Of a DNA stretch of 64,000 nucleotides, positions 12,001 through 36,100 are shown one piece after another. Made by a program: the position numbers and the translations under genes. Under the pieces are notes generated by a model, which saw nothing but the letters and a program-made list of their open reading frames with translations, was not told the DNA's origin and ran no database searches. Each line of letters starts with the position of its first letter. Positions within the stretch are counted from its first letter, which is position 1. Source of the stretch: Auanema rhodensis (taxonomy: Eukaryota > Animalia > Nematoda); assembly GCA_964057225.1 (NCBI GenBank), contig OZ059896.1, positions 4,030,001-4,094,000 of the forward strand, written 5' to 3'.

Positions 12001-15000
12001 TGCATCATTTTTCAAACGATCATAACTAATTTTTGTATTAAGCGTTTCTTAATGTAGTATAGTGCATTCGATGCGGATTTTTAAGCTGCGTCGATCTGTG
12101 TTATCAGATTTCCGCTAGCTTAAAAATGCACCGAGATATGAACTGATATAAGTTCACACCTATATCCTCGATTTTCACCCTGAAGAATTAATTTTTTCGT
12201 TGAATGACATTGTCCATCGTTTTTGCCTTGAAAAAAGGAATCTAAAAACATCTACTTTTTGCTAAATTATTCTGAAATTTTTCGAAAAAATTTTTGTCAA
12301 AATGTTTTTGGAAGCAATTTTGAGTGTACATGGAAACTCAACATACACTAATGCATCATTTTTCAAACGATCATAACTAATTTTTGTATTAAGCGTTTCT
12401 CAATGTAGTATAGTGCATTCGATGCGGATTTTTAAGCTGCGTCGATCTGTGTTATCAGATTTCCGCTAGCTTAAAAATGCACCGAGATATCAACTGATAT
12501 AAGTTCACACCTATATCCTCGATTTTCACCCTGAAGAATTAATTTTTTCGTTGAATGACATTGTCCATCGTTTTTGCCTTGAAAAAAGGAATCTAAAAAC
12601 ATCTACTTTTTGCTAAATTATTCTGAAATTTTTCGAAAAAATTTTTGTCAAAATGTTTTTGGAAGCAATTTTGAGTGTACATGGAAACTCAACATACACT
12701 AATGCATCATTTTTCAAACGATCATAACTAATTTTTGTATTAAGCGTTTCTCAATGTAGTATAGTGCATTCGATGCGGATTTTTAAGCTGCGTCGATCTG
12801 TGTTATCAGATTTCCGCTAGCTTAAAAATGCACCGAGATATCAACTGATATAAGTTCACACCTATATCCTCGATTTTCACCCTGAAGAATTAATTTTTTC
12901 GTTGAATGACATTGTCCATCGTTTTTGCCTTGAAAAAAGGAATCTAAAAACATCTACTTTTTGCTAAATTATTCTGAAATTTTTCGAAAAAATTTTTGTC
13001 AAAATGTTTTTGGAAGCAATTTTGAGTGTACATGGAAACTCAACATACACTAATGCATCATTTTTCAAACGATCATAACTAATTTTTGTATTAAGCGTTT
13101 CTTAATGTAGTATAGTGCATTCGATGCGGATTTTTAAGCTGCGTCGATCTGTGTTATCAGATTTCCGCTAGCTTAAAAATGCACCGAGATATGAACTGAT
13201 ATAAGTTCACACCTATATCCTCGATTTTCACCCTGAAGAATTAATTTTTTCGTTGAATGACATTGTCCATCGTTTTTGCCTTGAAAAAAGGAATCTAAAA
13301 ACATCTACTTTTTGCTAAATTATTCTGAAATTTTTCGAAAAAATTTTTGTCAAAATGTTTTTGGAAGCAATTTTGAGTGTACATGGAAACTCAACATACA
13401 CTAATGCATCATTTTTCAAACGATCATAACTAATTTTTGTATTAAGCGTTTCTCAATGTAGTATAGTGCATTCGATGCGGATTTTTAAGCTGCGTCGATC
13501 TGTGTTATCAGATTTCCGCTAGCTTAAAAATGCACCGAGATATCAACTGATATAAGTTCACACCTATATCCTCGATTTTCACCCTGAAGAATTAATTTTT
13601 TCGTTGAATGACATTGTCCATCGTTTTTGCCTTGAAAAAAGGAATCTAAAAACATCTACTTTTTGCTAAATTATTCTGAAATTTTTCGAAAAAATTTTTG
13701 TCAAAATGTTTTTGGAAGCAATTTTGAGTGTACATGGAAACTCAACATACACTAATGCATCATTTTTCAAACGATCATAACTAATTTTTGTATTAAGCGT
13801 TTCTTAATGTAGTATAGTGCATTCGATGCGGATTTTTAAGCTGCGTCGATCTGTGTTATCAGATTTCCGCTAGCTTAAAAATGCACCGAGATATGAACTG
13901 ATATAAGTTCACACCTATATCCTCGATTTTCACCCTGAAGAATTAATTTTTTCGTTGAATGACATTGTCCATCGTTTTTGCCTTGAAAAAAGGAATCTAA
14001 AAACATCTACTTTTTGCTAAATTATTCTGAAATTTTTCGAAAAAATTTTTGTCAAAATGTTTTTGGAAGCAATTTTGAGTGTACATGGAAACTCAACATA
14101 CACTAATGCATCATTTTTCAAACGATCATAACTAATTTTTGTATTAAGCGTTTCTCAATGTAGTATAGTGCATTCGATGCGGATTTTTAAGCTGCGTCGA
14201 TCTGTGTTATCAGATTTCCGCTAGCTTAAAAATGCACCGAGATATCAACTGATATAAGTTCACACCTATATCCTCGATTTTCACCCTGAAGAATTAATTT
14301 TTTCGTTGAATGACATTGTCCATCGTTTTTGCCTTGAAAAAAGGAATCTAAAAACATCTACTTTTTGCTAAATTATTCTGAAATTTTTCGAAAAAATTTT
14401 TGTCAAAATGTTTTTGGAAGCAATTTTGAGTGTACATGGAAACTCAACATACACTAATGCATCATTTTTCAAACGATCATAACTAATTTTTGTATTAAGC
14501 GTTTCTCAATGTAGTATAGTGCATTCGATGCGGATTTTTAAGCTGCGTCGATCTGTGTTATCAGATTTGCGCTAGCTTGAAAATGCACCGAGATATCAAC
14601 TGATATAAGTTCACACCTATATCCTCGATTTTCACCCTGAAGAATTAATTTTTTCGTTGAATGACATTGTCCATCGTTTTTGCCTTGAAAAAAGGAATCT
14701 AAAAACATCTACTTTTTGCTAAATTATTCTGAAATTTTTCGAAAAAATTTTTGTCAAAATGTTTTTGGAAGCAATTTTGAGTGTACATGGAAACTCAACA
14801 TACACTAATGCATCATTTTTCAAACGATCATAACTAATTTTTGTATTAAGCTTTTCTTAATGTAGTATAGTGCATTCGATGCGGACTTTTAAGCTGCGTC
14901 GATCTGTGTTATCAGATTTGCGCTAGCTTAAAAATGCACCGAGATATCAACTGATATAAGTTCACACCTATATCCTCGATTTTCACCCTGAAGAATTAAT

Positions 15001-17727
15001 TTTTTCGTTGAATAACATTGTCCATCGTTTTTGCCTTGAAAAAAGGAATCTAAAAACATCTACTTTTTGCTAAATTATTTTGAAATTTTTCGAAAAAATT
15101 TTTGTCAAAATGTTTTTGGAAGCAATGTTGAGTGTACATGGAAACTCAACATACACTAATGCATCATTTTTCAAACGATCATAACTAATTTTTGTATTAA
15201 GCTTTTCTTAATGTAGTATAGTGCATTCGATGCGGACTTTTAAGCTGCGTCGATCTGTGTTATCAGATTTGCGCTAGCTTAAAAATGCACCGAGATATCA
15301 ACTGATATAAGTTCACACCTATATCCTCGATTTTCACCCTGAAGAATTAATTTTTTCGTTGAATAACATTGTCCATCGTTTTTGCCTTGAAAAAAGGAAT
15401 CTAAAAACATCTACTTTTTGCTGAATTATTTTGAAATTTTTCGAAAAAATTTTTGTCAAAATGTTTTTGGAAGCAATTTTGAGTGTACATGGAAACTCAA
15501 CATACACTAATGCATCATTTTTCAAACGATCATAACTAATTTTTGTATTAAGCTTTTCTTAATGTAGTATAGTGCATTCGATGCGGATTTTTAAGCTGCG
15601 TCGATCTGTGTTATCAGATTTGCGCTAGCTTGAAAATGCACCGAGATATCAACTGATATAAGTTCACACCTATATCCTCGATTTTCACCCTGAAGAATTA
15701 ATTTTTTCGTTGAATTACATTGTTCATCGTTTTTGCCTCGAAAAAAGGAATCTAAAAACATCTACTTTTCGCTAAATTATTTTGAAATTTTTCGAAAAAA
15801 TTTTTGTCAAAATGTTTTTGGAAGCAATTTTGAGTGTACATGGAAACTCAACATACACTATTGCATCATTTTTCAAACGATCATAACTAATTTTTGTATT
15901 AAGCTTTTCTTAATGTAGTATAGTGCATTCGATGCGGTTTTTTAAGCTGCGTCGATCTGTGCTATCAGATTTCCGCTAGCTTAAAAATGCACCGAGATAT
16001 CAACTGATATAAGTTCACACCTATATCCTCGATTTTCACCCTGAAGAATTAATTTTTTCGTTGAATAACATTGTCCATCGTTTTTGCCTTGAAAAAAGGA
16101 ATCTAAAAACATCTACTTTTTGCTAAATTATTTTGAAATTTTTCGAAAAAATTTTTGTCAAAATGTTTTTGGAAGCAATTTTGAGTGTACATGGAAACTC
16201 AACATACACTATTGCATCATTTTTCAAACGATCATAACTAATTTTTGTATTAAGCTTTTCTTAATGTAGTATAGTGCATTCGATGCGGTTTTTTAAGCTG
16301 CGTCGATCTGTGCTATCAGATTTCCGCTAGCTTAAAAATGCACCGAGATATCAACTGATATAAGTTCACACCTATATCCTCGATTTTCACCCTGAAGAAT
16401 TAATTTTTTCGTTGAATAACATTGTCCATCGTTTTTGCCTTGAAAAAAGGAATCTAAAAACATCTACTTTTTGCTAAATTATTTTGAAATTTTTCGAAAA
16501 AATTTTTGTCAAAATGTTTTTGGAAGCAATGTTGAGTGTACATGGAAACTCAACATACACTAATGCATCATTTTTCAAACGATCATAACTAATTTTTGTA
16601 TTAAGCTTTTCTTAATGTAGTATAGTGCATTCGATGCGGACTTTTAAGCTGCGTCGATCTGTGTTATCAGATTTGCGCTAGCTTAAAAATGCACCGAGAT
16701 ATCAACTGATATAAGTTCACACCTATATCCTCGATTTTCACCCTGAAGAATTAATTTTTTCGTTGAATAACATTGTCCATCGTTTTTGCCTTGAAAAAAG
16801 GAATCTAAAAACATCTACTTTTTGCTAAATTATTTTGAAATTTTTCGAAAAAATTTTTGTCAAAATGTTTTTGGAAGCAATTTTGAGTGTACATGGAAAC
16901 TCAACATACACTATTGCATCATTTTTCAAACGATCATAACTAATTTTTGTATTAAGCTTTTCTTAATGTAGTATAGTGCATTCGATGCGGATTTTTAAGC
17001 TGCGTCGATCTGTACTATCAGATTTGCGCTAGCTTGAAAATGCACCGAGATATGAACTGATATAAGTTCACACTTATATCCTCGATTTTCACCCTGAAGA
17101 ATTAATTTTTTCGTTGAATAACATTGTCCATCGTTTTTGCCTTGAAAAAAGGAATCTAAAAACATCTACTTTTCGCTAAATTATTTTGAAATTTTTCGAA
17201 AAAATTTTTGTCAAAATGTTTTTGGAAGCAATGTTGAGTGTACATGGAAACTCAACATACACTAATGCATCATTTTTCAAACGATCATAACTAATTTTTG
17301 TATTAAGCTTTTCTTAATGTAGTATAGTGCATTCGATGCGGACTTTTAAGCTGCGTCGATCTGTGTTATCAGATTTGCGCTAGCTCAAAAATGCACCGAG
17401 ATATCAACTGATATAAGTTCACACTTATATCCTCGATTTTCACCCTGAAGAATTAATTTTTTCGTTGAATAACAATGTCCATCGTCTTTGTCTTGAAAAA
17501 AGAAATCTAAAAACATCTACTTTTTGTGAAATTATTTTGTAATTTTTCGGGAAACTTTTTGTCAAAATGTTTTTGGAAGCAATGTTGAGTGTACATGGAA
17601 ACTCAACATACACTAATGCATCATTTTTCAAACGATCATAACTAATTTTTGTATTGAGCGTTTCTCCATGTAGTATAGTGCATTCGATGCGGATTTTTAA
17701 GCTGCGTCGATCTGTGTTATCAGATTT
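1..17727 (+). repeat. 351-bp tandem satellite, left array (~50.5 monomers, continues beyond window start)
   Basis: Motifs recur every 351 bp. Homologous ORFs at 991/15733 (42x351) and 11824/17440 (16x351) show exact phase. The array ends at ...TATCAGATTT (17727). Confidence 0.98.
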
Positions 17728-17754
17728 ACTTCAACTTCTAATCAACAACCCAAC

Positions 17755-17770
17755 GGCCCTCTTTAGGGCC
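17755..17770 (+). terminator. Replication-dependent histone mRNA 3' stem-loop (SLBP-binding hairpin), nematode-type loop CTTT
   Basis: CCCAAC-GGCCCT-CTTT-AGGGCC-ACA gives a 6-bp stem and 4-nt loop with typical A/C-rich flanks. It matches the C. elegans histone hairpin, which has C at loop position 1. Confidence 0.9.
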
Positions 17771-18156
17771 ACATTTAAATTTGATGTATTCATAATGATT
17801 TATAATATAATACTGTGTCTGTCTTGTCTTTTTTTGCTATGTAATGATAATTGATATGATATGTTTCGCTGTTATGTAAAGGAGAATCCCTATCTTTGAT
17901 ACTCCATATCCATCTCTATTTTTTTTTATGAATTTCATTAATTATGCTTTCATGTTGATAACAACAACAGTGATCATATCTAATGCCTCACATGTTTCTA
18001 TTCCACGTTTGTTCGCAAATAAACAGTTGTTTATGTTATTCTTATCGTTTATATAAAATTTAAATATACATTTCTAGAATTTCTAGCAAAATTAAGCGCC
18101 AATATGCTTGGTGGCGATTACAATGGGTTTTTGCGCGGTGACCTCTACAGCACTAG

Positions 18157-18163
18157 TATATAA
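18157..18163 (+). promoter_or_regulatory. Putative TATA box of histone H4 promoter (TATATAA)
   Basis: Lies 49 bp upstream of the H4-like ATG within a locally GC-richer segment, consistent with the short 5' UTRs of histone genes. Confidence 0.6.
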
Positions 18164-18205
18164 CGGAGATGCTAGGGTTACTATTCAACACACAGCTTGA
18201 TCAGC

Positions 18206-18250
18206 ATGTCTGAACGTGGTAAAGGAGGAAAAGGTCTTGAATTTATATGA
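18206..18250 (+). pseudogene. H4: Histone H4 5' fragment, copy 1 (MSERGKGGKGLEFI*)
   Basis: ATG TCT GAA CGT GGT AAA GGA GGA AAA GGT CTT matches H4 MSGRGKGGKGL at 10/11 residues, with G>E at codon 3. Homology then stops and TGA follows. 'GL' favours H4 over H2A. Confidence 0.85.
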
Positions 18251-18588
18251 TTGAATAATAAAATAGTGATTGACTTATCTGTGCTATGTGCTTGTTGTTG
18301 ATTAGAAGTTGAAGTAATTGATTGGTAGTTGAAGCTGACTACAACCGCTCTTTCTTTTTTTTAAAATGATATGATTGTTTAGATTTTCATTGCTTGCTTA
18401 TGCTATTTTGAAAATTTGAATATTCTTAGTGTTGTATTTTTTTTAATTTTTATTTTTTCTCTTTTTTTTTTCATATTTATACTTATATATATAAATATAA
18501 TGTATATATTGAGAGATTTAGCTAACTAGTTAATATATTAGCATTTGTACAGTTCGGCTTTCATTGACTTTAGGAATGTGGGCGTGGT

Positions 18589-18825
18589 TTATTTACTCTA
18601 GTATACTCTATACATCTCCTGATAATTGTTTGATCTTATTTATATTTGTTGAAAATTCTTCACATTTTCTTATTGAAAGTGCTTCTTGATATTTCTTCTT
18701 TGCTTTTATTATTTGATTTTACAATGACTTGATATAACTTTCTTTTGTATCCTGTTCATGGAATGAATAATTATATACTGTAGTATAATTTGTACATCTC
18801 TTGATAATTGTTTGTTCTTATTTGT
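18589..18825 (-). repeat. Diverged ~180-bp satellite monomers (T-rich orientation)
   Basis: TTATTTACTCTAGTATAC, CTTCTTGATA and GTATCCTGTTCATGGA match core-satellite motifs with extra substitutions. Confidence 0.8.
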
Positions 18826-19855
18826 TATCCATGAACAGGATACGAAAGAAAGTTATAACAAGTCATTGAAAAATTAAGTATTAAAAACAAAAAAAAAGTA
18901 TCAAGAAGCATTTTCAGTAAGAAAACATGAAGAAATTTTAACAAATACAAATAAGAATGAGAAAATTATCAAGAGATGCATAACGTATTATAGAGTATCA
19001 GTAAACATTTAAAATATGAACAGGTTTCAAAAAAAGTAATATCAATTCATGGGAAAGTATTAAAAGCAGAGAAGAAGTATCAAGAAGGATTTTCAGTAAG
19101 AAAACATGAAGTAATTTTAACAAATACAAAGAAGAATGAGAAAATTATCAAGAGATATATAACGTACTATAGAGTATCAGTAAACATTTTAAATATGAAC
19201 AGGTTTCAAAAAAAGTTATAACAAGTCATGGTAAAATCAAGTTTTAAAAGCAAAGAAGAAGTATCAAGAAGGATTTTCAGCAAGAAAACATGAAGAAATT
19301 TTAACAAATACAAAGAAGAATGAGAAAATTATCGAAAGATGTACAAATTATACTAGAGTATCCGTAAACATTTAAAATATGAACAGGTTTCAACAAAAGT
19401 AATATCAAGTCATGATAAAATCAAGTATTAAAAACAAAAAAAAAGTATCAAGAAGCATTTTCAGTAAGAAAACAGGAAGAAATTTTAACAAATACAAAAC
19501 AGAATGACAAAATTATCGAAAGATGTACAAAGTATACTAGAGTATCAGTAAACATTTAAAATATGAACAGGTTTCAACAAAAGTAAAATCAAGTCATGAT
19601 AAAATCAAGTATTAAAAACAAAAAAAAAGTATCAAGAAGCATTTTCAGTAAGAAAACAGGAAGAAATTTTAACAAATACAAAAAAGAATGAGAAAATTAT
19701 CAAGAGATGTACAAAATATACTAGAGTAAAATATTATTTATTCCATGAACATGATACGAAAGAAAGTTATAACAAGTCATGGTAAAATCAAGTATTAAAA
19801 ACAAAAAAAAGTATCAAGAAGCATATTCAGTAGGAAAACATGAAGAAATTTTAAC
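18825..19855 (+). repeat. 179-184-bp satellite block, A-rich orientation
   Basis: Repeating AAGTATCAAGAAG..TTTTCAGTAAGAAAACATGAAGAAATTTTAACAAATAC units. Confidence 0.93.
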
Positions 19856-20661
19856 TTTGTTCGCAAATAAACAGTTGTTTATGTTATTCTTATCGTTTAT
19901 ATAAAATTTAAATATACATTTCTAGAATTGAGCGGCAAAATTAAGCGCCAATATGCTTGGTGGCGATTACAATGGGTTTTTGCGCGGTGACCTCTACAGC
20001 ACTAGTATAGAACGGAGATGCTAGGGTTACTATTCAACACACAGCTTGATCAGCATGTCTGAACGTGGTAAAGGAGGAAAAGGTCTTGAACTTATATGAT
20101 TGAATAATAAAATAGTGATTGACTTATCTGTGCTATGTGCTTGTTGTTGATTAGAAGTTGAAGTAATGATGCTGACTACAACCGCTCTTTCTTTTTTTTA
20201 AAATGATATGATTGTTTAGATTTTCATTGCTTGCTTATGCTATTTTGAAAATTTGAATATTCTTAGTGTTGTATTTTTTTAAATTTTTATTTTTTCTCTT
20301 TTTTTTTCATATTTATACTTATATATATAAATATAATGTATATATTGAGAGATTTAGCTAACTAGTTAATATATTAGCATTTGTACAGTTCGGCTTTCAT
20401 TGACGTTAGGAATGTGGGCGTGGTTTATTTACTCTAGTATACTCTATACATCTCCTGATAATTGTTTGATCTTATTTATATTTCTTGAAAATTCTTCACA
20501 TTTTCTTATTGAAAGTGCTTCTTGATATTTCTTATTTGCTTTTATTATTTGATTTTACAATGACTTGATATAACTTTCTTTTGTATCCTGTTCATGGAAT
20601 GAATAATTATATACTGTAGTATAATTTGTACATCTCTTGATAATTGTTTGTTCTTATTTGT
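19856..20661 (+). repeat. Histone-derived cassette, copy 2 (direct repeat of 18008-18825; lacks the stem-loop end)
   Basis: Starts abruptly at TTTGTTCGCAAATAAAC after satellite TTAAC and is colinear with copy 1. Its TATA reads TATAGAA (20006-20012). Confidence 0.93.
20055..20099 (+). pseudogene. H4: Histone H4 5' fragment, copy 2 (MSERGKGGKGLELI*)
   Basis: Same 11 codons and same breakpoint as copy 1. Confidence 0.85.
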
Positions 20662-21090
20662 ATTTGTAGAAATTTTCCAAAACAAAATGCTTCTTAACAC
20701 TTTTTCTTTGTTTTTAATACTTGATTTTACCATGACATGATATAACTTTCTTTCGTATCCTGCTCATGGAATAAATAATAGTTTACTCTAGTATACTCTG
20801 TACATCTCCTGAAAATTTTCTCATTCTACTTTGTATTCTTTAAAAATTCTTCATGTTTTCTTACTGAAAATACTTCTTGATACTTCTTCTTTGCTTTTAA
20901 AACTTGATTTTATCATGACTTGTTATAACTTTTTTTGAAACCTGTTTATATTTAAAATGTTTACTGATACTCTATAGTACGTTATATATCTCTTGATAAT
21001 TTTCTCATTCTTCTTGGTATTTGTTAAAATTTTTTTATGTTTTCCTACTGAAGATGCTTCTTGATACTTTTTTTTGTTTTTAATACTTGA
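20425..21090 (-). repeat. ~180-bp satellite block, T-rich orientation (diverged at its left end)
   Basis: Reverse-complement monomers ending at TAATACTTGA. Confidence 0.88.
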
Positions 21091-22590
21091 AGCATTTTCA
21101 GTAAGAAAACATGAAGAAATTTTAACAAATACAAAGAAGAATGAGAAAATTATCAAGAGATGTACAAAGTATACTAGAGTAAACTATTATTTTATCCATG
21201 AACAGGATACGAAAGAAAGTTATATCAAGTCATTGAAAAATCAAGTATTAAAAACAAAGAAAAAGTATCAAGAAGCATTTTCAGTAAGAAAACATGAAGA
21301 AATTTTAAAGAATACAATTAAGAATGAGAAAATTATCAGGAGATGTACAGAGTATACTAGAGTAAATAATTATTTACTACATGAACAAGATACGAAAGAA
21401 AGTAATATCAAGTCATGATAAAATCAAGTATTAAAAACAAAGAAGAAGTATCAAGAAGGATTTTCAATAAGAAAACATGAAGAAATTTTAACAAATACAA
21501 ATAAGAATGAGAAAATTATCAAGAGATGTATAACATATTATAGAGTATCAGTAAACATTTAAAATATGAACAGGTTTCAAAAAAAGTAATATCAACTCAT
21601 GGGGAAATCAAGTTTTAAAAGCAAAGAAGAAGTATCAAGAAGGATTTTCATTAAGAAAACATGAAGAAATTTTAACAAATACAAATAAGAATGAGAAAAT
21701 TATCAAGAGATGTATAACATATTATAGAGTATCAGTAAACATTTAAAATATGAACAGGTTTCAAAAAAAGTAATATCAATTCATGGGTAAGTATTAAAAG
21801 CAGAGAAGAAGTATCAAGAAGGATTTTCAGTAAGAAAACATGAAGAAATTTTAACAAATACAAAGAAGAATGAAAAAATTATCAAGAGATGCATAACGTA
21901 TTATAGAGTATCAGTAAACATTTAAAATATGAACAGGTTTCAAAAAAAGTAATATCATTTCATGGGGAAGTATTAAAAGCAAAGAAGAAGTATCAAGAAG
22001 CATTTTCAGTAAGATAACATGAAGAAATTTCAACAAATACAAAAAAGAATGAGAAAATTATCAAGAGATGCATAACGTATTATAGAGTATCAGTAAACAT
22101 TTAAAATATGAACAGGTTTCAAAAAAAGTAATATCATTTCATGGGGAAGTATTAAAAGCAAAGAAGAAGTATCAAGAAGGATTTTCAATAAGAAAACATG
22201 AAGAAATTTTAACAAATACAAAGAAGAATGAAAAAATTATCAAGAGATGCATAACGTATTATAGAGTATCAGTAAACATTTAAAATATGAACAGGTTTCA
22301 AAAAAAGTAATATCATTTCATGGGGAAGTATTAAAAGCAAAGAAGAAGTATCAAGAAGGATTTTCAATAAGAAAACATGAAGAAATTTTAACAAATACAA
22401 AGAAGAATGAAAAAATTATCAAGAGATGCATAACGTATTATAGAGTATCAGTAAACATTTAAAATATGAACAGGTTTCAAAAAAAGTAATATCATTTCAT
22501 GGGGAAGTATTAAAAGCAAAGAAGAAGTATCAAGAAGGATTTTCAATAAGAAAACATGAAGAAATTTCAACAAATACAAATAAGAATGAA
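21089..22590 (+). repeat. 179-184-bp satellite block, A-rich orientation
   Basis: CATGAAG recurs at 21110, 21293, 21476, 21660, 21839, 22018, 22197, 22376 and 22555 (periods 183, 183, 184, then 179). Confidence 0.95.
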
Positions 22591-22594
22591 AGAA

Positions 22595-25500
22595 CCTTCT
22601 TGATACTTCTTCTTTGCATTTAAAACTTGATTTTACCATGACTTGTTATAACTTTTTTTGAAACCTGTTCATATTTAAAATGTTTACTGATACTCTATAG
22701 TACGTTATATATCTCTTGATAATTTTCTCATTCTTATTTGTATTTGTTGAAATTTCTTCATGTTTTCTTATTGAAAATCCTTCTTGTTACTTCTTCTTTG
22801 CTTTTAATACTTCCCCATGAAATGATATTACCTTTTTTGAAACCTGTTCATATTTTAAATGTTTACTGATACTCTATAATATGTTATACATCTCTTGATA
22901 ATTTTCTCATTCTTATTTGTATTTGTTGAAATTTCTTCATGTTATCTTACTGAAAATGCTTCTTGATACTTTTTTTTGTTTTTAATACTTGATTTTACCT
23001 TGACTTGATATTACTTTCTTTCGTATCATGTTCATGGAATAAATAATAGTTTACTCTAGTATACTTTGTACATCTCTTGATAATTTTCTCATTCTTATTT
23101 GTATTTGTTGAAATTTCTTCATGTTTTCTTATTGAAAATCCTTCTTGATACTTCTTCTTCGCTTTTAATACTTCCCCATGAAATGATATTACTTTTTTTG
23201 AAACCTGTTCATATTTTAAATGTTTACTGATACTCTATTATACGTTATGCATCTCTTGATAATTTTTTCATTCTTCTTTGTATTTGTTAAAATTTCTTCA
23301 TGTTTTCTTACTGAAAATCCTTCTTGATACTTCTTCTCTGCTTTTAATACTTCCCCATGAATTGATATTACTTTTTTTGAAACCTGTTCATATTTCAAAT
23401 GTTTACTGATACTCTATAATATGTTATGCATCTTTCGATAATTTTCTCATTCTTTTTTGTATTTGTTAAAATTTCTTCATGTTTTCTTTTTGAAAATCCT
23501 TCTTGATACTTCTTCTTTGCTTTTAAAACTTGATTTTACCATGATTTGTTATAACTTTTTTTGAAACCTGTTCATATTTTAAATGTTTACTGATACTCTA
23601 TAATACGTTATGCATCTCTTGATAATTTTTTCATTCTTCTTTGTATTTGTTAAAAATTTCTTCATGTTTTCTTACTGAAAATCCTTCTTGATACTTCTTC
23701 TCTGCTTTTAATACTTCCCCATGAATTGATATTACTTTTTTTGAAACCTGTTCATATTTCAAATGTTTACTGATACTCTATAATATGTTATGCATCTTTC
23801 GATAATTTTCTCATTCTTTTTTGTATTTGTTAAAATTTCTTCATGTTTTCTTACTGAAAATCCTTCTTGATACTTCTTCTTTTCTTTTAAAACTTGATTT
23901 TACCATGACTTGTTATAACTTTTTTTGAAACCTGTTCATATTTAAAATGTTTACTGATACTCTATAAAACGTTATATATCTCTTGATAATTTTCTCATTC
24001 TTATTTGTATTTGTTGAAATATCTTCATGTTTTCTTATTGAAAATCCTTCTTGATACTTCTTCTTTGCTTTTAAAACTTGATTTTTCCATGACTTGTTAT
24101 AACTTTTTTTGAAACCTGTTCATATTTAAAATGTTTACTGATACTCTATAGTACGTTATATATCTCTTGATAATTTTCTCATTCTTCTGTGTATTTGTTA
24201 AAATTTCTTCATGTTTTCCTACTGAAGATGCTTCTTGATACTTTTTTTTGTTTTTAATACTTGATTTTACCATGACTTGTTATAACTTTCTTTCGTATCA
24301 TGTTCATGGAATAAATAATATTTTACTCTAGTATATTTTGTACATCTCTTGATAATTTTCTCATTCTTTTTTGTATTTGTTAAAATTTCTTCCTGTTTTC
24401 TTACTGAAAATGCTTCTTGATACTTTTTTTTTGTTTTTAATACTTGATTTTATCATGACTTGATTTTACTTTTGTTGAAACCTGTTCATATTTTAAATGT
24501 TTGCTGATACTCTAGTATACTTTGTACATCTTTCGATAATTTTGTCATTCTTTTTTGTATTTGTTAAAATTTCTTCATGTTTTCTTACTGAAAATCCTTC
24601 TTGATACTTCTTCTTTGCTTTTAAAACTTGATTTTACCATGACTTGTTATAACTTTTTTTGAAACCTGTTCATATTTAAAATGTTTACTGATACTCTATA
24701 GTACGTTATATATCTCTTGATAATTTTCTCATTCTTATTTGTATTTGTTAAAATTTCTTCATGTTTTCTTACTGAAAATGCTTCTTGATACTTTTTTTTG
24801 TTTTTAAAACTTGATTTTATCATGACTTGATATTACTTTCTTTCGTATCTTGTTCATGTAGTAAATAATTATTTACTCTAGTATACTTTGTACATTTCTT
24901 GATAATTTTCTCATTCTTCTTTGTATTCTTAAAAATTTCTTCATGTTTTCTTACTGAAAATCCTTCTTGATACTTCTTCTTTGCTTTTAAAACTCGATTT
25001 TCCCATGAATTGATATTACTTTTTTTGAAACCTGTTCATATTTTAAATGTTTACTGATACTCTATTATACGTTATGCATCTCTTGATAATTTTTTCATTC
25101 TTCTTTGTATTTGTTAAAATTTCTTCATGTTTTCTTACTGAAAATCCTTCTTGATACTTCTTCTCTGCTTTTAATACTTCCCCATGAAATGATATTACCT
25201 TTTTTGAAACCTGTTCATATTTTAAATGTTTACTGATACTCTATAATATGTTATACATCTCTTGATAATTTTCTCATTCTTATTTGTATTTGTTGAAATT
25301 TCTTCATGTTATCTTACTGAAAATGCTTCTTGATACTTTTTTTTGTTTTTAATACTTGATTTTACCTTGACTTGATATTACTTTCTTTCGTATCATGTTC
25401 ATGGAATAAATAATAGTTTACTCTAGTATACTTTGTACATCTCTTGATAATTTTCTCATTCTTATTTGTATTTGTTGAAATTTCTTCATGTTTTCTTATT

Positions 25501-28500
25501 GAAAATCCTTCTTGATACTTCTTCTTCGCTTTTAATACTTCCCCATGAAATGATATTACTTTTTTTGAAACCTGTTCATATTTTAAATGTTTACTGATAC
25601 TCTATTATACGTTATGCATCTCTTGATAATTTTTTCATTCTTCTTTGTATTTGTTAAAATTTCTTCATGTTTTCTTACTGAAAATCCTTCTTGATACTTC
25701 TTTCTGCTTTTAATACTTCCCCATGAATTGATATTACTTTTTTTGAAACCTGTTCATATTTCAAATGTTTACTGATACTCTATAATATGTTATGCATCTT
25801 TCGATAATTTTCTCATTCTTTTTTGTATTTGTTAAAATTTCTTCATGTTTTCTTACTGAAAATCCTTCTTGATACTTCTTCTTTTCTTTTAAAACTTGAT
25901 TTTACCATGACTTGTTATAACTTTTTTTGAAACCTGTTCATATTTAAAATGTTTACTGATACTCTATAGTACGTTATATATCTCTTGATAATTTTCTCAT
26001 TCTTATTTGTATTTGTTGAAATATCTTCATGTTTTCTTATTGAAAATCCTTCTTGATACTTCTTCTTTGCTTTCAAAACTTGATTTTACCATGATTTGTT
26101 ATAACTTTTTTTGAAACCTGTTCATATTTTAAATGTTTACTGATACTCTATAATACGTTATGCATCTCTTGATAATTTTTTCATTCTTCTTTGTATTTGT
26201 TAAAAATTTCTTCATGTTTTCTTACTGAAAATCCTTCTTGATACTTCTTCTCTGCTTTTAATACTTCCCCATGAATTGATATTACTTTTTTTGAAACCTG
26301 TTCATATTTCAAATGTTTACTGATACTCTATAATATGTTATGCATCTTTCGATAATTTTCTCATTCTTTTTTGTATTTGTTAAAATTTCTTCATGTTTTC
26401 TTACTGAAAATCCTTCTTGATACTTCTTCTTTTCTTTTAAAACTTGATTTTACCATGACTTGTTATAACTTTTTTTGAAACCTGTTCATATTTAAAATGT
26501 TTACTGATACTCTATAGTACGTTATATATCTCTTGATAATTTTCTCATTCTTATTTGTATTTGTTGAAATATCTTCATGTTTTCTTATTGAAAATCCTTC
26601 TTGATACTTCTTCTTTGCTTTTAAAACTTGATTTTACCATGACTTGTTATAACTTTTTTTGAAACCTGTTCATATTTAAAATGTTTACTGATACTCTATA
26701 GTACGTTATATATCTCTTGATAATTTTCTCATTCTTCTGTGTATTTGTTAAAATATCTTCATGTTTTCTTATTGAAAATCCTTCTTGATACTTCTTCTTT
26801 GCTTTTAAAACTTGATTTTACCATGACTTGTTATAACTTTTTTTGAAACCTGTTCATATTTAAAATGTTTACTGATACTCTATAGTACGTTATATATCTC
26901 TTGATAATTTTCTCATTCTTATTTGTATTTGTTGAAATATCTTCATGTTTTCTTATTGAAAATCCTTCTTGATACTTCTTCTTTGCTTTTAAAACTTGAT
27001 TTTACCATGACTTGTTATAACTTTTTTTGAAACCTGTTTATATTTAAAATGTTTACTGATACTCTATAGTACGTTATATATCTCTTGATAATTTTCTCAT
27101 TCTTATTTGTATTTGTTGAAATTTCTTCATGTTTTCTTATTGAAAATCCTTCTTGATACTTCTTCTTTGCTTTTAATACTTCCCCATGAAATGATATTAC
27201 TTTTTTCGAAATCTGTTCATATTTTAAATGTTTACTGATACTCTATAATACGTTATGCATCTCTTGATAATTTTTTCATTCTTCTTTGTATTTGTTAAAA
27301 TTTCTTCATGTTTTCTTACTGAAAATCCTTCTTGATACTTCTTCTCTGCTTTTAATACTTCCCCATGAATTGATATTACTTTTTTTGAAACCTGTTCATA
27401 TTCCAAATGTTTACTGATACTCTATAATATGTTATGCATCTTTCGATAATTTTCTCATTCTTTTTTGTATTTGTTAAAATTTCTTCATGTTTTCTTACTG
27501 AAAATCCTTCTTGATACTTCTTCTTTGCTTTTAAAACTTGATTTTACCATGACTTGTTATAACTTTTTTTGAAACCTGTTCATATTTAAAATGTTTACTG
27601 ATACTCTATAGTACGTTATATATCTCTTGATAATTTTCTCATTCTTCTGTGTATTTGTTAAAATTTCTTCATGTTTTCCTACTGAAGATGCTTCTTGATA
27701 CTTTTTTTTGTTTTTAATACTTGATTTTACCATGACTTGTTATAACTTTCTTTCGTATCATGTTCATGGAATAAATAATATTTTACTCTAGTATATTTTG
27801 TACATCTCTTGATAATTTTCTCATTCTTTTTTGTATTTGTTAAAATTTCTTCCTGTTTTCTTACTGAAAATGCTTCTTGATACTTTTTTTTTGTTTTTAA
27901 TACTTGATTTTATCATGACTTGATTTTACTTTTGTTGAAACCTGTTCATATTTTAAATGTTTACTGATACTCTAGTATACTTTGTACATCTTTCGATAAT
28001 TTTGTCATTCTTTTTTGTATTTGTTAAAATTTCTTCATGTTTTCTTACTGAAAATCCTTCTTGATACTTCTTCTTTGCTTTTAAAACTTGATTTTACCAT
28101 GACTTGTTATAACTTTTTTTGAAACCTGTTCATATTTAAAATGTTTACTGATACTCTATAGTACGTTATATATCTCTTGATAATTTTCTCATTCTTATTT
28201 GTATTTGTTAAAATTTCTTCATGTTTTCTTACTGAAAATGCTTCTTGATACTTTTTTTTGTTTTTAAAACTTGATTTTATCATGACTTGATATTACTTTC
28301 TTTCGTATCTTGTTCATGTAGTAAATAATTATTTACTCTAGTATACTTTGTACATTTCTTGATAATTTTCTCATTCTTCTTTGTATTCTTAAAAATTTCT
28401 TCATGTTTTCTTACTGAAAATCCTTCTTGATACTTCTTCTTTGCTTTTAAAACTCGATTTTCCCATGAATTGATATTACTTTTTTTGAAACCTGTTCATA

Positions 28501-31500
28501 TTTTAAATGTTTACTGATACTCTATAATACGTTATACATTTCTTGATAATTTTCTCATTCTTCTTTGTATTTGTTAAAATTTCTTCATGTTTTCTTATTG
28601 AAAATCCTTCTTGATACTTCTTCTTTGTTTTTAATACTTGATTTTATCATGACTTGATATTACTTTCTTTCGTATCTTGTTCATGTAGTAAATAATTATT
28701 TACTCTAGTATACTTTGTACATTTCTTGATAATTTTCTCATTCTTATTTGTATTTGTTAAAATTTCTTCATGTTTTCTTACTGAAAATGCTTCTTGATAC
28801 TTTTTTTTTGTTTTTAATACTTGATTTTACCATGACTTGTTATAACTTTCTTTCGTATCCTGTTCATGGAATAAATAATAGTTTACTCTAGTATACTTTG
28901 TACATTTCTTGATAATTTTCTCATTCTTATTTGTATTTGTTAAAATTTCTTCATGTTTTCTTACTGAAAATCCTTCTTGATACTTCTTCTTTGCTTTTAA
29001 AACTTGATTTTACCATGACTTGTTATAACTTTTTTTGAAACCTGTTCATATTTAAAATGTTTACTGATACTCTATAGTACGTTATATATCTCTTGATAAT
29101 TTTCTCATTCTTATTTGTATTTGTTAAAATTTCTTCATGTTTTCTTACTGAAAATGCTTCTTGATACTTTTTTTTGTTTTTAATACTTGATTTTACCATG
29201 ACTTGTTATAACTTTCTTTCGTATCCTGTTCATGGAATAAATAATAGTTTACTCTTGTATACTTTGTACATCTCCTGATAATTTTCTCATTCTTCTTTGT
29301 ATTCTTGAAAATTTCTTCATGTTTTCTTACTGAAAATCCTTCTTGATACTTCTTCTTTGCTTTTAAAACTCGATTTTCCCATGAATTGATATTACTTTTT
29401 TTGAAACCTGTTCATATTTTAAATGTTTACTGATACTCTATAATACGTTATACATTTCTTGATAATTTTCTCATTCTTCTTTGTATTTGTTAAAATTTCT
29501 TCATGTTTTCTTATTGAAAATCCTTCTTGATACTTCTTCTTTGCTTTTAATACTTCCCCATGAAATGATATTACTTTTTTTGAAACCTGTTCATATTTTA
29601 AATGTTTACTGATACTCTATAATATGTTATGCATCTTTCGATAATTTTCTCATTCTTTTTTGTATTTGTTAAAATTTCTTCATGTTTTCTTACTGAAAAT
29701 CCTTCTTGATACTTCTTCTTTGCTTTTAAAACTTGATTTTACCATGACTTGTTATAACTTTTTTTGAAACCTGTTCATATTTAAAATGTTTACTGATACT
29801 CTATAATACGTTATGCATCTCTTGATAATTTTTTCATTCTTCTTTGTATTTGTTAAAATTTCTTCATGTTTTCTTACTGAAAATCCTTCTTGATACTTTT
29901 TTTTTGTTTTTAATACTTGATTTTATCATGACTTGATATTACTTTTGTTGAAACCTGTTCATATTTTAAATGTTTACTGATACTCTAGTATAATTTGTAC
30001 ATCTTTCGATAATTTTCTCATTCTTCTTTGTATTTGTTAAAATTTCTTCATGTTTTCTTGCTGAAAATCCTTCTTGATACTTCTTCTTTGCTTTTAAAAC
30101 TTGATTTTACCATGACTTGTTATAACTTTTTTTGAAACCTGTTCATATTTAAAATGTTTACTGATACTCTATAGTACGTTATATATCTCTTGATAATTTT
30201 CTCATTCTTCTTTGTATTTGTTAAAATTTCTTCATGTTTTCTTACTGAAAATCCTTCTTGATACTTCTTCTTTGCTTTTAAAACTTGATTTTACCATGAC
30301 TTGTTATAACTTTTTTTGAAACCTGTTCATATTTAAAATGTTTACTGATACTCTATAATACGTTATGCATCTCTTGATAATTTTTTCATTCTTCTTTGTA
30401 TTTGTTAAAATTTCTTCATGTTTTCTTACTGAAAATCCTTCTTGATACTTCTTCTTTGCTTTTAAAACTTGATTTTACCATGACTTGTTATAACTTTTTT
30501 TGAAACCTGTTCATATTCCAAATGTTTACTGATACTCTATAATATGTTATGCATCTTTCGATAATTTTCTCATTCTTTTTTGTATTTGTTAAAATTTCTT
30601 CATGTTTTCTTACTGAAAATCCTTCTTGATACTTCTTCTTTGCTTTTAAAACTTGATTTTACCATGACTTGTTATAACTTTTTTTGAAACCTGTTCATAT
30701 TCCAAATGTTTACTGATACTCTATAATATGTTATGCATCTTTCGATAATTTTCTCATTCTTTTTTGTATTTGTTAAAATTTCTTCATGTTTTCCTACTGA
30801 AGATGCTTCTTGATACTTTTTTTTGTTTTTAATACTTGATTTTACCATGACTTGTTATAACTTTCTTTCGTATCATGTTCATGGAATAAATAATATTTTA
30901 CTCTAGTATATTTTGTACATCTCTTGATAATTTTCTCATTCTTTTTTGTATTTGTTAAAATTTCTTCCTGTTTTCTTACTGAAAATGCTTCTTGATACTT
31001 TTTTTTTGTTTTTAATACTTGATTTTATCATGACTTGATTTTACTTTTGTTGAAACCTGTTCATATTTTAAATGTTTACTGATACTCTAGTATACTTTGT
31101 ACATCTTTCGATAATTTTGTCATTCTGTTTTGTATTTGTTAAAATTTCTTCATGTTTTCTTACTGAAAATGCTTCTTGATACTTTTTTTTTGTTTTAATA
31201 CTTGATTTTATCATGACTTGATTTTACTTTTGTTGAAACCTGTTCATATTTTAAATGTTTACTGATACTCTAGTATACTTTGTACATCTTTCGCTAATTT
31301 TCTCATTCTTCTTTGTATTTGTTAAAATTTCTTCATGTTTTCTTACTGAAAATCCTTCTTGATACTTCTTCTTTGCTTTTAAAACTTGATTTTACCATGA
31401 CTTGTTATAACTTTTTTTGAAACCTGTTCATATTTAAAATGTTTACTGATACTCTATAGTACGTTATGCATCTCTTGATAATTTTTTCATTCTTCTTTGT

Positions 31501-32242
31501 ATTTGTTAAAATTTCTTCCTGTTTTCTTACTGAAAATGCTTCTTGATACTTTTTTTTTGTTTTTAATACTTGATTTTATCATGACTTGATTTTACTTTTG
31601 TTGAAACCTGTTCATATTTTAAATGTTTACTGATACTCTAGTATACTTTGTACATCTTTCGATAATTTTGTCATTCTGTTTTGTATTTGTTAAAATTTCT
31701 TCATGTTTTCTTACTGAAAATGCTTCTTGATACTTTTTTTTTGTTTTAATACTTGATTTTATCATGACTTGATTTTACTTTTGTTGAAACCTGTTCATAT
31801 TTTAAATGTTTACTGATACTCTAGTATACTTTGTACATCTTTCGCTAATTTTCTCATTCTTCTTTGTATTTGTTAAAATTTCTTCATGTTTTCTTACTGA
31901 AAATCCTTCTTGATACTTCTTCTTTGCTTTTAAAACTTGATTTTACCATGACTTGTTATAACTTTTTTTGAAACCTGTTCATATTTAAAATGTTTACTGA
32001 TACTCTATAGTACGTTATGCATCTCTTGATAATTTTTTCATTCTTCTTTGTATTTGTTAAAATTTCTTCATGTTTTCTTACTGAAAATCCTTCTTGATAC
32101 TTCTTCTCTGCTTTTAATACTTTCCCATGAATTGATATTACTTTTTTTGAAACCTGTTCATATTTTAAATGTTTACTGATACTCTATAATACGTTATGCA
32201 TCTCTTGATAATTTTCTCATTCTTATTTGTATTTGTTAAAAT
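22595..32242 (-). repeat. Main 179-184-bp satellite block, T-rich orientation (~53 monomers)
   Basis: Continuous tandem units containing CCTTCTTGATACTTCTTC and GAAACCTGTTCATATTT, with several length and sequence variants. Confidence 0.96.
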
Positions 32243-32654
32243 GTGAAAAAAAATGTGAAGAATTTTCAAGAAATATAAATAAGATCAAACAATTATCAGG
32301 AGATGTATAGAGTATACTAGAGTAAATAAACCACGCCCACATTCCTAACGTCAATGAAAGCCGAACTGTACAAATGCTAATATATTAACTAGTTAGCTAA
32401 ATCTCTCAATATATACATTATATTTATATATATAAGTATAAATATGAAAAAAAAAGAGAAAAAATAAAAATTAAAAAAAATACAACACTAAGAATATTCA
32501 AATTTTCAAAATAGCATAAGCAAGCAATGAAAATCTAAACAATCATATCATTTTAAAAAAAAGAAAGAGCGGTTGTAGTCAGCATCATTACTTCAACTTC
32601 TAATCAACAACAAGCACATAGCACAGATAAGTCAATCACTATTTTATTATTCAA

Positions 32655-32699
32655 TCATATAAATTCAAGACCTTTTCCTCCTTTACCACGTTCAGACAT
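32655..32699 (-). pseudogene. H4: Histone H4 5' fragment, copy 3 (MSERGKGGKGLEFI*)
   Basis: TCATATAAATTCAAGACCTTTTCCTCCTTTACCACGTTCAGACAT is the reverse complement of copy 1. Confidence 0.85.
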
Positions 32700-32741
32700 G
32701 CTGATCAAGCTGTGTGTTGAATAGTAACCCTAGCATCTCCG

Positions 32742-32748
32742 TTATATA
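32742..32748 (-). promoter_or_regulatory. Putative TATA box of H4 promoter, copy 3
   Basis: TTATATA on + (TATATAA on -), with the same spacing to the ATG as copy 1. Confidence 0.6.
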
Positions 32749-33135
32749 CTAGTGCTGTAGAGGTCACCGCGCAAAAACCCATTGTAATCGCCACCAAGCA
32801 TATTGGCGCTTAATTTTGCCGCTCAATTCTAGAAATGTATATTTAAATTTTATATAAACGATAAGAATAACATAAACAACTGTTTATTTGCGAACAAACG
32901 TGGAATAGAAACATGTGAGGCATTAGATATGATCACTGTTGTTGTTATCAACATGAAAGCATAATTAATGAAATTCATAAAAAAAAATAGAGATGGATAT
33001 GGAGTATCAAAGATAGGGATTCTCCTTTACATAAGAGCGAAACATATCATATCAATTATCATTACATAGCAAAAAAAGACAAGACAGACACAGTATTATA
33101 TTATAAATCATTATGAATACATCAAATTTAAATGT

Positions 33136-33151
33136 GGCCCTAAAGAGGGCC
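33136..33151 (-). terminator. Histone 3' stem-loop, copy in right cassette
   Basis: GGCCCTAAAGAGGGCC on + is GGCCCTCTTTAGGGCC on -, intact. Confidence 0.9.
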
Positions 33152-33178
33152 GTTGGGTTGTTGATTAGAAGTTGAAGT

Positions 33179-36100
33179 AAATCTGATAACACAGATTGAC
33201 GCAGCTTAAAAATCCGCATCGAATGCACTATACTACATGGAGAAACGCTCAATACAAAAATTAGTTATGATCGTTTGAAAAATGATGCATTAGTGTATGT
33301 TGAGTTTCCATGTACACTCAACATTGCTTCCAAAAACATTTTGACAAAAAGTTTCCCGAAAAATTTCAAAATAATTTCACAAAAAGTAGATGTTTTTAGA
33401 TTCCTTTTTTCAAGACAAAAACGATGGACATTGTTATTCAACAAAAAAATTAATTCTTCACGGTGAAAATCGAGGATATAAGTGTGAACCTATATCAGTT
33501 GATATCTCGGTGCATTTTTAAGCTAGCGCAAATCTGATAACACAGATCGACGCAGCTTAAAAATCCGCATCGAATGCACTATACTACATTAAGAAAAGCT
33601 TAATACAAAAATTAGTTATGATCGTTTGAAAAATGATGCATTAGTGTATGTTGAGTTTCCATGTACACTCAACATTGCTTCCAAAAACATTTTGACAAAA
33701 ATTTTCCCGAAAAATTTCAAAATAATTTCACAAAAAGTAGATGTTTTTAGATTCCTTTTTTCAAGACAAAGACGATGGACATTGTTATTCAACAAAAAAA
33801 TTAATTCTTCACGGTGAAAATCGAGGATATAAGTGTGAACCTATATCAGTTGATATCTCGGTGCATTTTCAAGCTAGTGCAAATCTGATAACACAGATCG
33901 ACGCAGCTTAAAAATCCGCATCGAATGCACTATACTACATTAAGAAAAGCTTAATACAAAAATTAGTTATGATCGTTTGAAAAATGATGCATTAGTGTAT
34001 GTTGAGTTTCCATGTACACTCAACATTGCTTCCAAAAACATTTTGACAAAAATTTTCCCGAAAAATTTCAAAATAATTTCACAACAAGTAGATGTTTTTA
34101 GATTCCTTTTTTCAAGACAAAGACGATGGACATTGTTATTCAACAAAAAAAATTAATTCTTCAGGGTGAAAATCGAGGATATAAGTGTGAACTTATATCA
34201 GTTGATATCTCGGTGCATTTTTAAGCTAGCGCAAATCTGATAACACAGATCGACGCAGCTTAAAAATCCGCATCAAATGCACTATACTACATTAAGAAAA
34301 GCTTAATACAAAAATTAGTTATGATCGTTTGAAAAATGATGCATTAGTGTATGTTGAGTTTCCATGTACACTCAACATTGCTTCCAAAAACATTTTGACA
34401 AAAATTTTCCCGAAAAATTTCAAAATAATTTCACAAAAAGTAGATGTTTTTAGATTCCTTTTTTCAAGACAAAGACGATGGACATTGTTATTCAACAAAA
34501 AAATTAATTCTTCACGGTGAAAATCGAGGATATAAGTGTGAACCTATATCAGTTGATATCTCGGTGCATTTTCAAGCTAGCGCAAATCTGATAACACAGA
34601 TCGACGCAGCTTAAAAATCCGCATCGAATGCACTATACTACATTAAGAAAAGCTTAATACAAAAATTAGTTATGATCGTTTGAAAAATGATGCATTAGTG
34701 TATGTTGAGTTTCCATGTACACTCAACATTGCTTCCAAAAACATTTTGACAAAAATTTTCCCGAAAAATTTCAAAATAATTTCACAAAAAGTAGATGTTT
34801 TTAGATTCCTTTTTTCAAGACAAAGACGATGGACATTGTTATTCAACAAAAAAATTAATTCTTCAGGGTGAAAATCGAGGATATAAGTGTGAACTTATAT
34901 CAGTTGATATCTCGGTGCATTTTTAAGCTAGCGCAAATCTGATAACACAGATCGACGCAGCTTAAAAATCCACATCGAATGCACTATACTACATTGGGAA
35001 ACACTCAATACAAAAATTAGTTATGATCGTTTGAAAAATGATGCATTAGTGTATGTTGAGTTTCCATGTACACTCAACATTGCTTCCAAAAACATTTTGA
35101 CAAAAATTTTCCCGAAAAATTTCAAAATAATTTCACAAAAAGTAGATGTTTTTAGATTCCTTTTTTCAAGACAAAGACGATGGACATTGTTATTCAACAA
35201 AAAAATTAATTCTTCACGGTGAAAATCGAGGATATAAGTGTGAACCTATATCAGTTGATATCTCGGTGCATTTTCAAGCTAGCGCAAATCTGATAACACA
35301 GATCGACGCAGCTTAAAAATCCGCATCGAATGCACTATACTACATTAAGAAAAGCTTAATACAAAAATTAGTTATGATCGTTTGAAAAATGATGCATTAG
35401 TGTATGTTGAGTTTCCATGTACACTCAACATTGCTTCCAAAAACATTTTGACAAAAATTTTCCCGAAAAATTTCAAAATAATTTCACAAAAAGTAGATGT
35501 TTTTAGATTCCTTTTTTCAAGACAAAGACGATGGACATTGTTATTCAACAAAAAAATTAATTCTTCACGGTGAAAATCGAGGATATAAGTGTGAACCTAT
35601 ATCAGTTGATATCTCGGTGCATTTTCAAGCTAGCGCAAATCTGATAACACAGATCGACGCAGCTTAAAAATCCGCATCGAATGCACTATACTACATTAAG
35701 AAAAGCTTAATACAAAAATTAGTTATGATCGTTTGAAAAATGATGCATTAGTGTATGTTGAGTTTCCATGTACACTCAACATTGCTTCCAAAAACATTTT
35801 GACAAAAATTTTCCCGAAAAATTTCAAAATAATTTCACAAAAAGTAGATGTTTTTAGATTCCTTTTTTCAAGACAAAGACGATGGACATTGTTATTCAAC
35901 AAAAAAATTAATTCTTCAGGGTGAAAATCGAGGATATAAGTGTGAACTTATATCAGTTGATATCTCGGTGCATTTTTAAGCTAGCGCAAATCTGATAACA
36001 CAGATCGACGCAGCTTAAAAATCCGCATCGAATGCACTATACTACATTAAGAAAAGCTTAATACAAAAATTAGTTATGATCGTTTGAAAAATGATGCATT

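Follow-up and report, generated by a model that had tools for sequence, protein, structure and literature searches.

Introduction

Hairpin RNA (hpRNA) loci and inverted-repeat loci that give rise to endogenous small interfering RNAs (endo-siRNAs) occur in Drosophila and C. elegans. On the lampbrush chromosomes of the newt Notophthalmus, promoters of structural genes are read through into satellite DNA (PMC2114352, satellite 2; PMC5615363), read-through into satellite adjacent to histone genes having been described by Diaz et al. (1981) and by Gall et al. (1981; both listed in PMC5615363). Satellite arrays are known to hold gene-fragment relics and less-homogenised monomers at their edges (reviewed in PMC5615363), and in the programmed DNA elimination of Ascaris the major 121-bp satellite is not targeted by small interfering RNAs (siRNAs; PMC12633612). 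The subject here is a short, histone-derived element in a 64,000-nucleotide stretch of the nematode Auanema rhodensis (contig OZ059896.1, positions 4,030,001 to 4,094,000 of the forward strand), the whole of which is referred to as the window. The element, termed the seam, lies between a 351-bp and a 184-bp satellite, carries a histone H4 promoter together with the first codons of H4, and is present in three copies. A preliminary description of this DNA read the three promoters as co-opted to transcribe the 184-bp core convergently, generating double-stranded RNA (dsRNA) and small RNAs against the satellite. That interpretation is partly supported by the present analysis. The seam is probably a dead fragment of a histone cluster that became fixed between the two satellites, was copied along with them and is weakly transcribed locally; as a small-RNA generator it is a candidate only, and a doubtful one.

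Compared with these systems, the seam resembles the newt loci in that a histone-locus promoter stands beside tandem satellite, into which RNA continues from the gene-derived part. In the newt, however, the histone genes are intact and it is termination that fails in oocytes, whereas the seam has an 11-codon stump, and its RNA, which sets in ahead of the H4 TATA box, covers about 0.6 kb plus scattered satellite contigs. As at the hpRNA loci of Drosophila and C. elegans, the adjoining inverted blocks of the window would yield long intramolecular dsRNA if transcribed but, unlike hpRNA and endo-siRNA loci, the orientation switch on the seam side is only 84% complementary and the blocks resemble ordinary fold-back rearrangements of satellite. 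In keeping with relics at array edges, unique gene-derived DNA has been kept at the border and copied with the array; the seam relic differs from such relics in general in being derived from histone genes, in keeping a stem-loop, both TATA boxes and the ATG, and in being present in RNA. With Ascaris it shares a nematode setting with large satellite domains close to a chromosome end. As such the seam is an array-border relic amid fold-back inversions, a product of ordinary satellite dynamics, for which the newt read-through is the nearest precedent.

A Histone-Cluster Fragment at the Seam

In copy 1 the unique part of the seam occupies 17728-18593 (+ strand, delimited by a blastn map), and the element as a whole has the order stem-loop of an upstream histone gene, spacer of ~430 bp, H4 gene cut after 18239, foreign spacer and first 184-bp units. 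A 24-nucleotide (nt) sequence at 17726-17749 (+, exact match), which shares its first 2 nt with the last 351-bp unit, precedes the stem-loop, and its reverse complement recurs as an exact match at 18294-18317. The histone 3′ stem-loop itself lies at 17750-17796 (+; Rfam Histone3, 28.3 bits, E=1.7e-4; stem 17755-17770, loop CTTT) with its mirror at 33110-33156 (− strand; 28.3 bits, E=1.7e-4; stem-loop proper 33136-33151), both scores falling below the Histone3 gathering score of 34. A stem-loop with a loop that begins with C is presumably nematode-like. The stem-loop at 17750-17796 is best read as the remnant of an upstream histone gene whose body has been lost.

Beyond it, the former histone intergenic spacer (17797-18156, +) contains a second, consensus TATA box, TATATAAA, at 18050-18057. 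The H4 promoter and start follow at 18157-18239 (+), consisting of the TATA box TATATAAC (18157-18164), a leader, the ATG at 18206 and a 34-nt H4 start (18206-18239). Copy 2 repeats this arrangement at 20006-20088 (+) with the TATA box reading TATAGAAC (20006-20013; T>G at 20010) and the H4 start at 20055-20088, while in copy 3 it lies at 32666-32748 (−), with TATATAAC at 32741-32748 and the H4 start at 32666-32699. Exact matches therefore bear out the preliminary description, which had reported a TATA box, leader and H4 start at all three sites with a mutated TATA box in copy 2. Since TATATAAC was found 15 more times in 17000-34000, every one inside the 184-bp satellite, the motif carries little weight on its own.

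The 34-nt H4 start encodes MSERGKGGKGL plus 1 nt, with Glu as the third codon in place of the Gly of H4. Past 18239 the sequence is unrelated to H4 and the frame meets a stop three codons on; a complete H4 open reading frame (~103 codons) was not found at the seam, where the match amounts to 11 codons and 1 nt. The identity of the stump as H4 is independently supported by a contig of the DNA run X1 that matches 18173-18239 and goes on with GAAAGGGAG, restoring the reading ...GLGKGG and carrying the sequence onward into intact H4. It had also been stated that each H4 fragment lacks a stem-loop of its own downstream. An Rfam search of 17000-34000 at E<=1 agrees, identifying only two histone stem-loops, both upstream of H4 fragments, and none downstream of any of the three.

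The non-histone spacer joined to the H4 stump (18240-18593, +) contains AATAAA at 18257, the inverted 24-mer at 18294-18317 and an insertion specific to copy 1 at 18318-18329. There is one such AATAAA per seam copy, 18 nt beyond the H4 break. A second X1 contig attaches 18240-18313 to another left flank (depth 2260, 3 substitutions). As X1 contigs continue each half of the seam separately, the seam is the fusion of a histone-cluster fragment with another repeat, and since the X1 contig bridging the H4 break is deeper (1057) than the H4-type contig (639), the relic is multi-copy. The right half of the seam (18240-18317, inverted 24-mer included) was donated by a more abundant repeat family, to judge from the deeper X1 contig.

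RNA at the Seam and Its Probable Start

Contigs of three RNA-labelled runs (X8, X9 and X14) and of the DNA run X1, selected through a run index built from 31-letter words of contigs, were aligned to 17450-19150. In X8 a 317-nt contig with a depth of 14.3 corresponds to 18115-18430, spanning the H4 break. This contig has the 12-nt deletion and the T at 18333 seen in copies 2 and 3, and because it both crosses the break and has variants of the copy 2/3 type it must come from a relic copy and not from a real H4 gene. Each of X8, X9 and X14 has one contig inside 18510-18695, reaching the first 184-bp unit, with the gap between the contigs (18431-18509) being a low-complexity stretch skipped in alignment. 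Only X9 has further contigs of the 184-bp satellite, at 18945-19150. RNA is continuous from the gene-derived part (18115-18430) into the satellite, which begins at 18594 and is entered by the contigs within 18510-18695.

All three RNA-labelled runs have zero depth over 17450-18076, which takes in the last 351-bp unit, the stem-loop and the next ~300 nt. In the DNA run X1 the summed depth of the 351-bp satellite is 10^6-10^7 and that of the relic ~10^3-10^4, making the satellite 10^3-10^4 times deeper than the relic, while in RNA the relic has a depth of 3-14. If the RNA signal were carried over from DNA the far deeper 351-bp satellite would appear first, and its zero depth in three of three runs argues that the signal is not carry-over. 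There is thus genuine, if weak, transcription of some member of the seam family, and it centres on the seam. The zero depth over 17450-18076 also speaks against abundant RNA of the 351-bp satellite ending in the stem-loop in these libraries.

The preliminary description placed the transcription start at ~18185, driven by the H4 promoter. The X8 contig does not bear this out, its left edge at 18115 lying ~70 nt upstream of ~18185 and preceding the H4 TATA box by 42 nt. The contigs are strandless and that of X8 contains the H4 TATA box itself; with RNA starting upstream of this box, the contig neither requires nor demonstrates activity of the H4 core promoter. Of the proposed transcription into the satellite, what stands is that seam RNA reaches the first 184-bp units, while the H4 core promoter as the driver is not supported. 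The second TATA box TATATAAA (18050-18057, +) lies ~60 nt upstream of the contig edge, and no TTTATT (an antisense poly(A) signal) was found near 18115. Both observations favour RNA of the + strand, most likely starting at ~18085-18115 from the upstream TATATAAA and not from the H4 TATA box. The X8 contig reads through the AATAAA that follows the H4 break.

Duplication History of the Seam

The three H4 promoters, 96-99% alike, are copies of one seam element and not independent occurrences. Copy 2 (19856-20661, +) is a partial direct duplicate of 18008-18825, 97% identical and without the stem-loop and the left 24-mer, while copy 3 (32247-33180, −) is an inverted copy of 17726-18671 with 97.6% identity over 945 nt and its 24-mer at 33157-33180. 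The inverted duplication extends over 17000-18671 versus 33906-32247. Its arms are gapless and 98% complementary across 17000-18081 and 32825-33906, relic sequence included, with the similarity running to 18671/32247 and picking up again at 18935-19443 versus 31734-32242, at 98%.

One inverted and one partial direct duplication (one, at most two, rearrangements) account for promoters that point into the core, so that selection need not be invoked, and the convergence on the core is mostly geometry, a by-product of the architecture. Copies 1 and 3 are separated by 6 difference events in the 866-nt unique part, evenly spread, and copies 2 and 3 by 4 differences in 652 nt, of which one is in the TATA box. 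No excess conservation of the promoter was detectable, copies 1 and 3 showing 0 events in 18090-18239 where ~1 is expected. The earlier observation that the promoters face the core was sound, but the co-opted design read into it is not supported: the geometry comes from duplications, the promoter is conserved no better than the rest of the relic and the TATA box has been hit in copy 2. Through the 12-nt insertion specific to copy 1 (18318-18329) the 17 nt before it are imperfectly duplicated in tandem (ttgattagaagttgaag / ttgattggtagttgaag), and further variants private to copy 1 are the block 18082-18086 and an A at 18333 (T in copies 2 and 3). Positions 18161 and 18242 also tell copies apart. 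The insertion is useful as a marker of copy 1.

Identity inside the left 351-bp array is 98.3% (98.3-98.7% inside the two arrays), while the arrays are 95.4% identical to each other with 17 fixed consensus differences. It is this contrast that argues against the palindrome being an artefact of assembly, and on sequence grounds both arms of the palindrome are genuine and old. Between the arms, the 351-bp units flanking the seam differ at 24 positions in 728 nt (96.7%; 17000-17727 versus 33179-33906). Being closer than the array average of 95.4%, they show the pattern expected where the edges of an array are poorly homogenised.

Between 6 and 35% of the sampled seam words also occur in DNA runs that bear the labels of two other organisms (X5 as organism B; X11, X13 and X15 as organism C), so that close relatives carry nearly identical seam sequence.

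Satellite Arrays and dsRNA Potential

Two oppositely oriented arrays of the 351-bp satellite are placed by Tandem Repeats Finder (TRF) at 1-17727 and 33179-64000. The left array (−) has 50.5 units (period 351, 98% matches) and is inverted relative to the right array (+), which has 87.8 units. Between them, 18831-32242 is occupied by arrays of a 179-184-bp satellite, the orientation of which (forward, F, or reverse, R) was established by mapping the junction onto the window with blastn, together with orientation anchors. A short F segment adjoins the seam (18594-18825, +, 1.3 units) and is followed by an R segment (18826-19855, −, 5.6 units) that folds back on 18594-18762. An F block at ~20440-21090 (+), which lies past copy 2 from 20607, gives way to an R block of 179/184-bp units (21090-22589, −, 8.3 units) mirroring the start of the main F block, and the main core itself (22590-32242, +, 52.9 units) runs up to the inverted seam, which begins at 32247. 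The opposite-orientation blocks reported earlier, with switches at ~18825, 21090, 22592 and 32245, were recovered by TRF, the blastn map and the anchors. In the main core (22590-32242) spacings of 184 nt and 179 nt alternate and some anchors are ~360 nt apart, and this alternation hints at a higher-order periodicity.

The switches give the window its potential for dsRNA. The predicted fold of 18560-19030 has an energy of −195 kcal/mol (z = −23.7) and that of 21960-23000 an energy of −556 kcal/mol, the inverted arms being 84% complementary at the first switch, which is nearest to the transcribed seam, and 93-95% at the third. Inverted repeats capable of forming long dsRNA are thus present (arms 84-95% complementary), and long hairpins would be expected of any RNA that reads through the inverted blocks. 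To this extent the predicted folds uphold the suggestion of fold-back dsRNA, provided that read-through takes place. No RNA contig spans a switch, with those of X8, X9 and X14 reaching 18695 and those of X9 covering 18945-19150, on either side of 18826.

No match was obtained with Rfam at the gathering threshold anywhere in the window. Sub-threshold matches resembling microRNAs at 21035-21114 (mir-392, lsy-6, MIR1512 and others; mir-392 with 30 bits against a gathering score of 62) were rejected because all of them lie on the hairpin made by an F/R switch of the 184-bp satellite, and they are most likely due to chance. Likewise, the absence of AATAAA from the core's minus strand (0 versus 84 expected from base composition) was discarded as no signal, the core being 53 copies of one unit. 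Exact look-ups of the products of open reading frames of the window gave no match. No relevant paper on a 351-bp nematode satellite came up in a literature search, and the unit sizes of published eliminated satellites (Mesorhabditis Sat11, Sat65 and Sat23; Caenorhabditis auriculariae, 150 and 160 bp) differ from those of the window satellites.

Origin of the Seam and Rival Explanations

In the sequence of events that best fits these observations, a histone-cluster fragment comprising a 3′ stem-loop, a spacer and an H4 promoter with 11 codons would have been severed after 18239 and joined to repeats of unrelated sequence. The fragment would then have become the fixed seam between the 351-bp and 184-bp satellites and been duplicated along with both, the outer pair of copies arising by one inverted duplication and the middle copy by a single partial direct one, while fold-back inversions flipped blocks of the 184-bp satellite. 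Weak transcription of some seam copy would now run from ~18085-18115 across the dead H4 start and reach the first 184-bp units.

A number of points weigh against this account of a dead and weakly transcribed relic. The RNA label of the several runs of the same organism that contain part of the seam is itself a guess ("RNA?"), and the RNA cannot be assigned to this locus, given many near-identical copies of the family. Because the contigs are strandless the RNA may run antisense, with its end near 18115, and because contigs may merge overlapping transcripts some initiation at the H4 start, ~18185, may occur. The relic diverges less between the arms (0.7%) than the adjoining 351-bp units do (3.3%), which could reflect constraint on the relic rather than array-specific homogenisation of the satellite. 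Finally, X1 contigs are almost depthless at 18704-18817, leaving the fold-back junction of copy 1 without independent confirmation.

The lack of direction in the contigs and of an assignment to any one copy also lends some weight to an explanation in which the relic promoters are inert and the RNA is antisense or pervasive low-level germline transcription, or comes from a relic inside an expressed gene elsewhere. The low depth is compatible with this, as is the presence of the 18115-18430 contig in only one of the three RNA-labelled runs. The share of RNA contigs running on into sequence unlike the window is nevertheless zero, and the sharp edge at 18115 has no TTTATT nearby but does have TATATAAA ~60 nt upstream on the + strand, such that inert promoters seem rather unlikely. 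The functional alternative, in which co-opted histone promoters are read through into the core and the hairpin and convergent dsRNA so formed yield small RNAs by which the satellite family is silenced or marked, draws on the finding of the relic and the 184-bp satellite in RNA contigs with the 351-bp satellite silent, on the strong predicted hairpins, and on the single sense AATAAA between each H4 stump and the satellite, there being few in the satellite. It must contend with an RNA contig that holds 42 nt upstream of the H4 TATA box, with the mutated TATA box of copy 2 and the lack of promoter-specific conservation, with a geometry already accounted for by the duplication history, and with an RNA depth (3-14) that is low for a multi-copy family; in Ascaris, moreover, the only nematode with comparable data to be located, the major 121-bp satellite is not an siRNA target (PMC12633612). 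Co-option is thus judged improbable. Its furthest extension, that the relic is a conserved promoter cassette at seams genome-wide, active in the germline or early embryo and transcribing inverted 184-bp blocks, with the resulting hairpin and convergent dsRNA and small RNAs marking the domains for heterochromatin, or for removal should the species eliminate DNA, while the 351-bp satellite stays silent, is highly improbable.

The perfect 24-nt inverted repeats at the ends of the 592-bp piece 17726-18317 would suit a non-autonomous, gene-fragment-carrying (Pack-type) DNA transposon inserted at array borders. No target-site duplication is seen at its flanks, however, copy 2 is without the left repeat and begins at the equivalent of 18008, the similarity between copies passes the right repeat to reach 18671-18825, and X1 places the right repeat in a separate, deeper repeat family with another left flank, all of which makes a transposon very improbable indeed. 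Hardly credible is a palindromic layout produced in assembly, for example by a chimeric fold-back read. X1 depth does fall to ~0 at 18761-18817, beside the first orientation switch, but a hole in contig coverage proves nothing and the arms differ by 2-5% with array-specific fixed variants, unlike a fold-back artefact. The reading of the seam as a dead histone-cluster fragment, copied with its satellites and transcribed locally, accordingly stays the probable one.

Significance

As an example of satellite-domain construction the window is clean and dated: a fragment of a gene cluster has been frozen at a border, duplicated both in inverted and direct orientation, and surrounded by fold-back inversions. 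It is the seam, and not the dominant satellite, that shows up in RNA. Were the seam transcript to prove a regular source of satellite dsRNA, it would provide a defined promoter to manipulate for the study of satellite silencing in nematodes.

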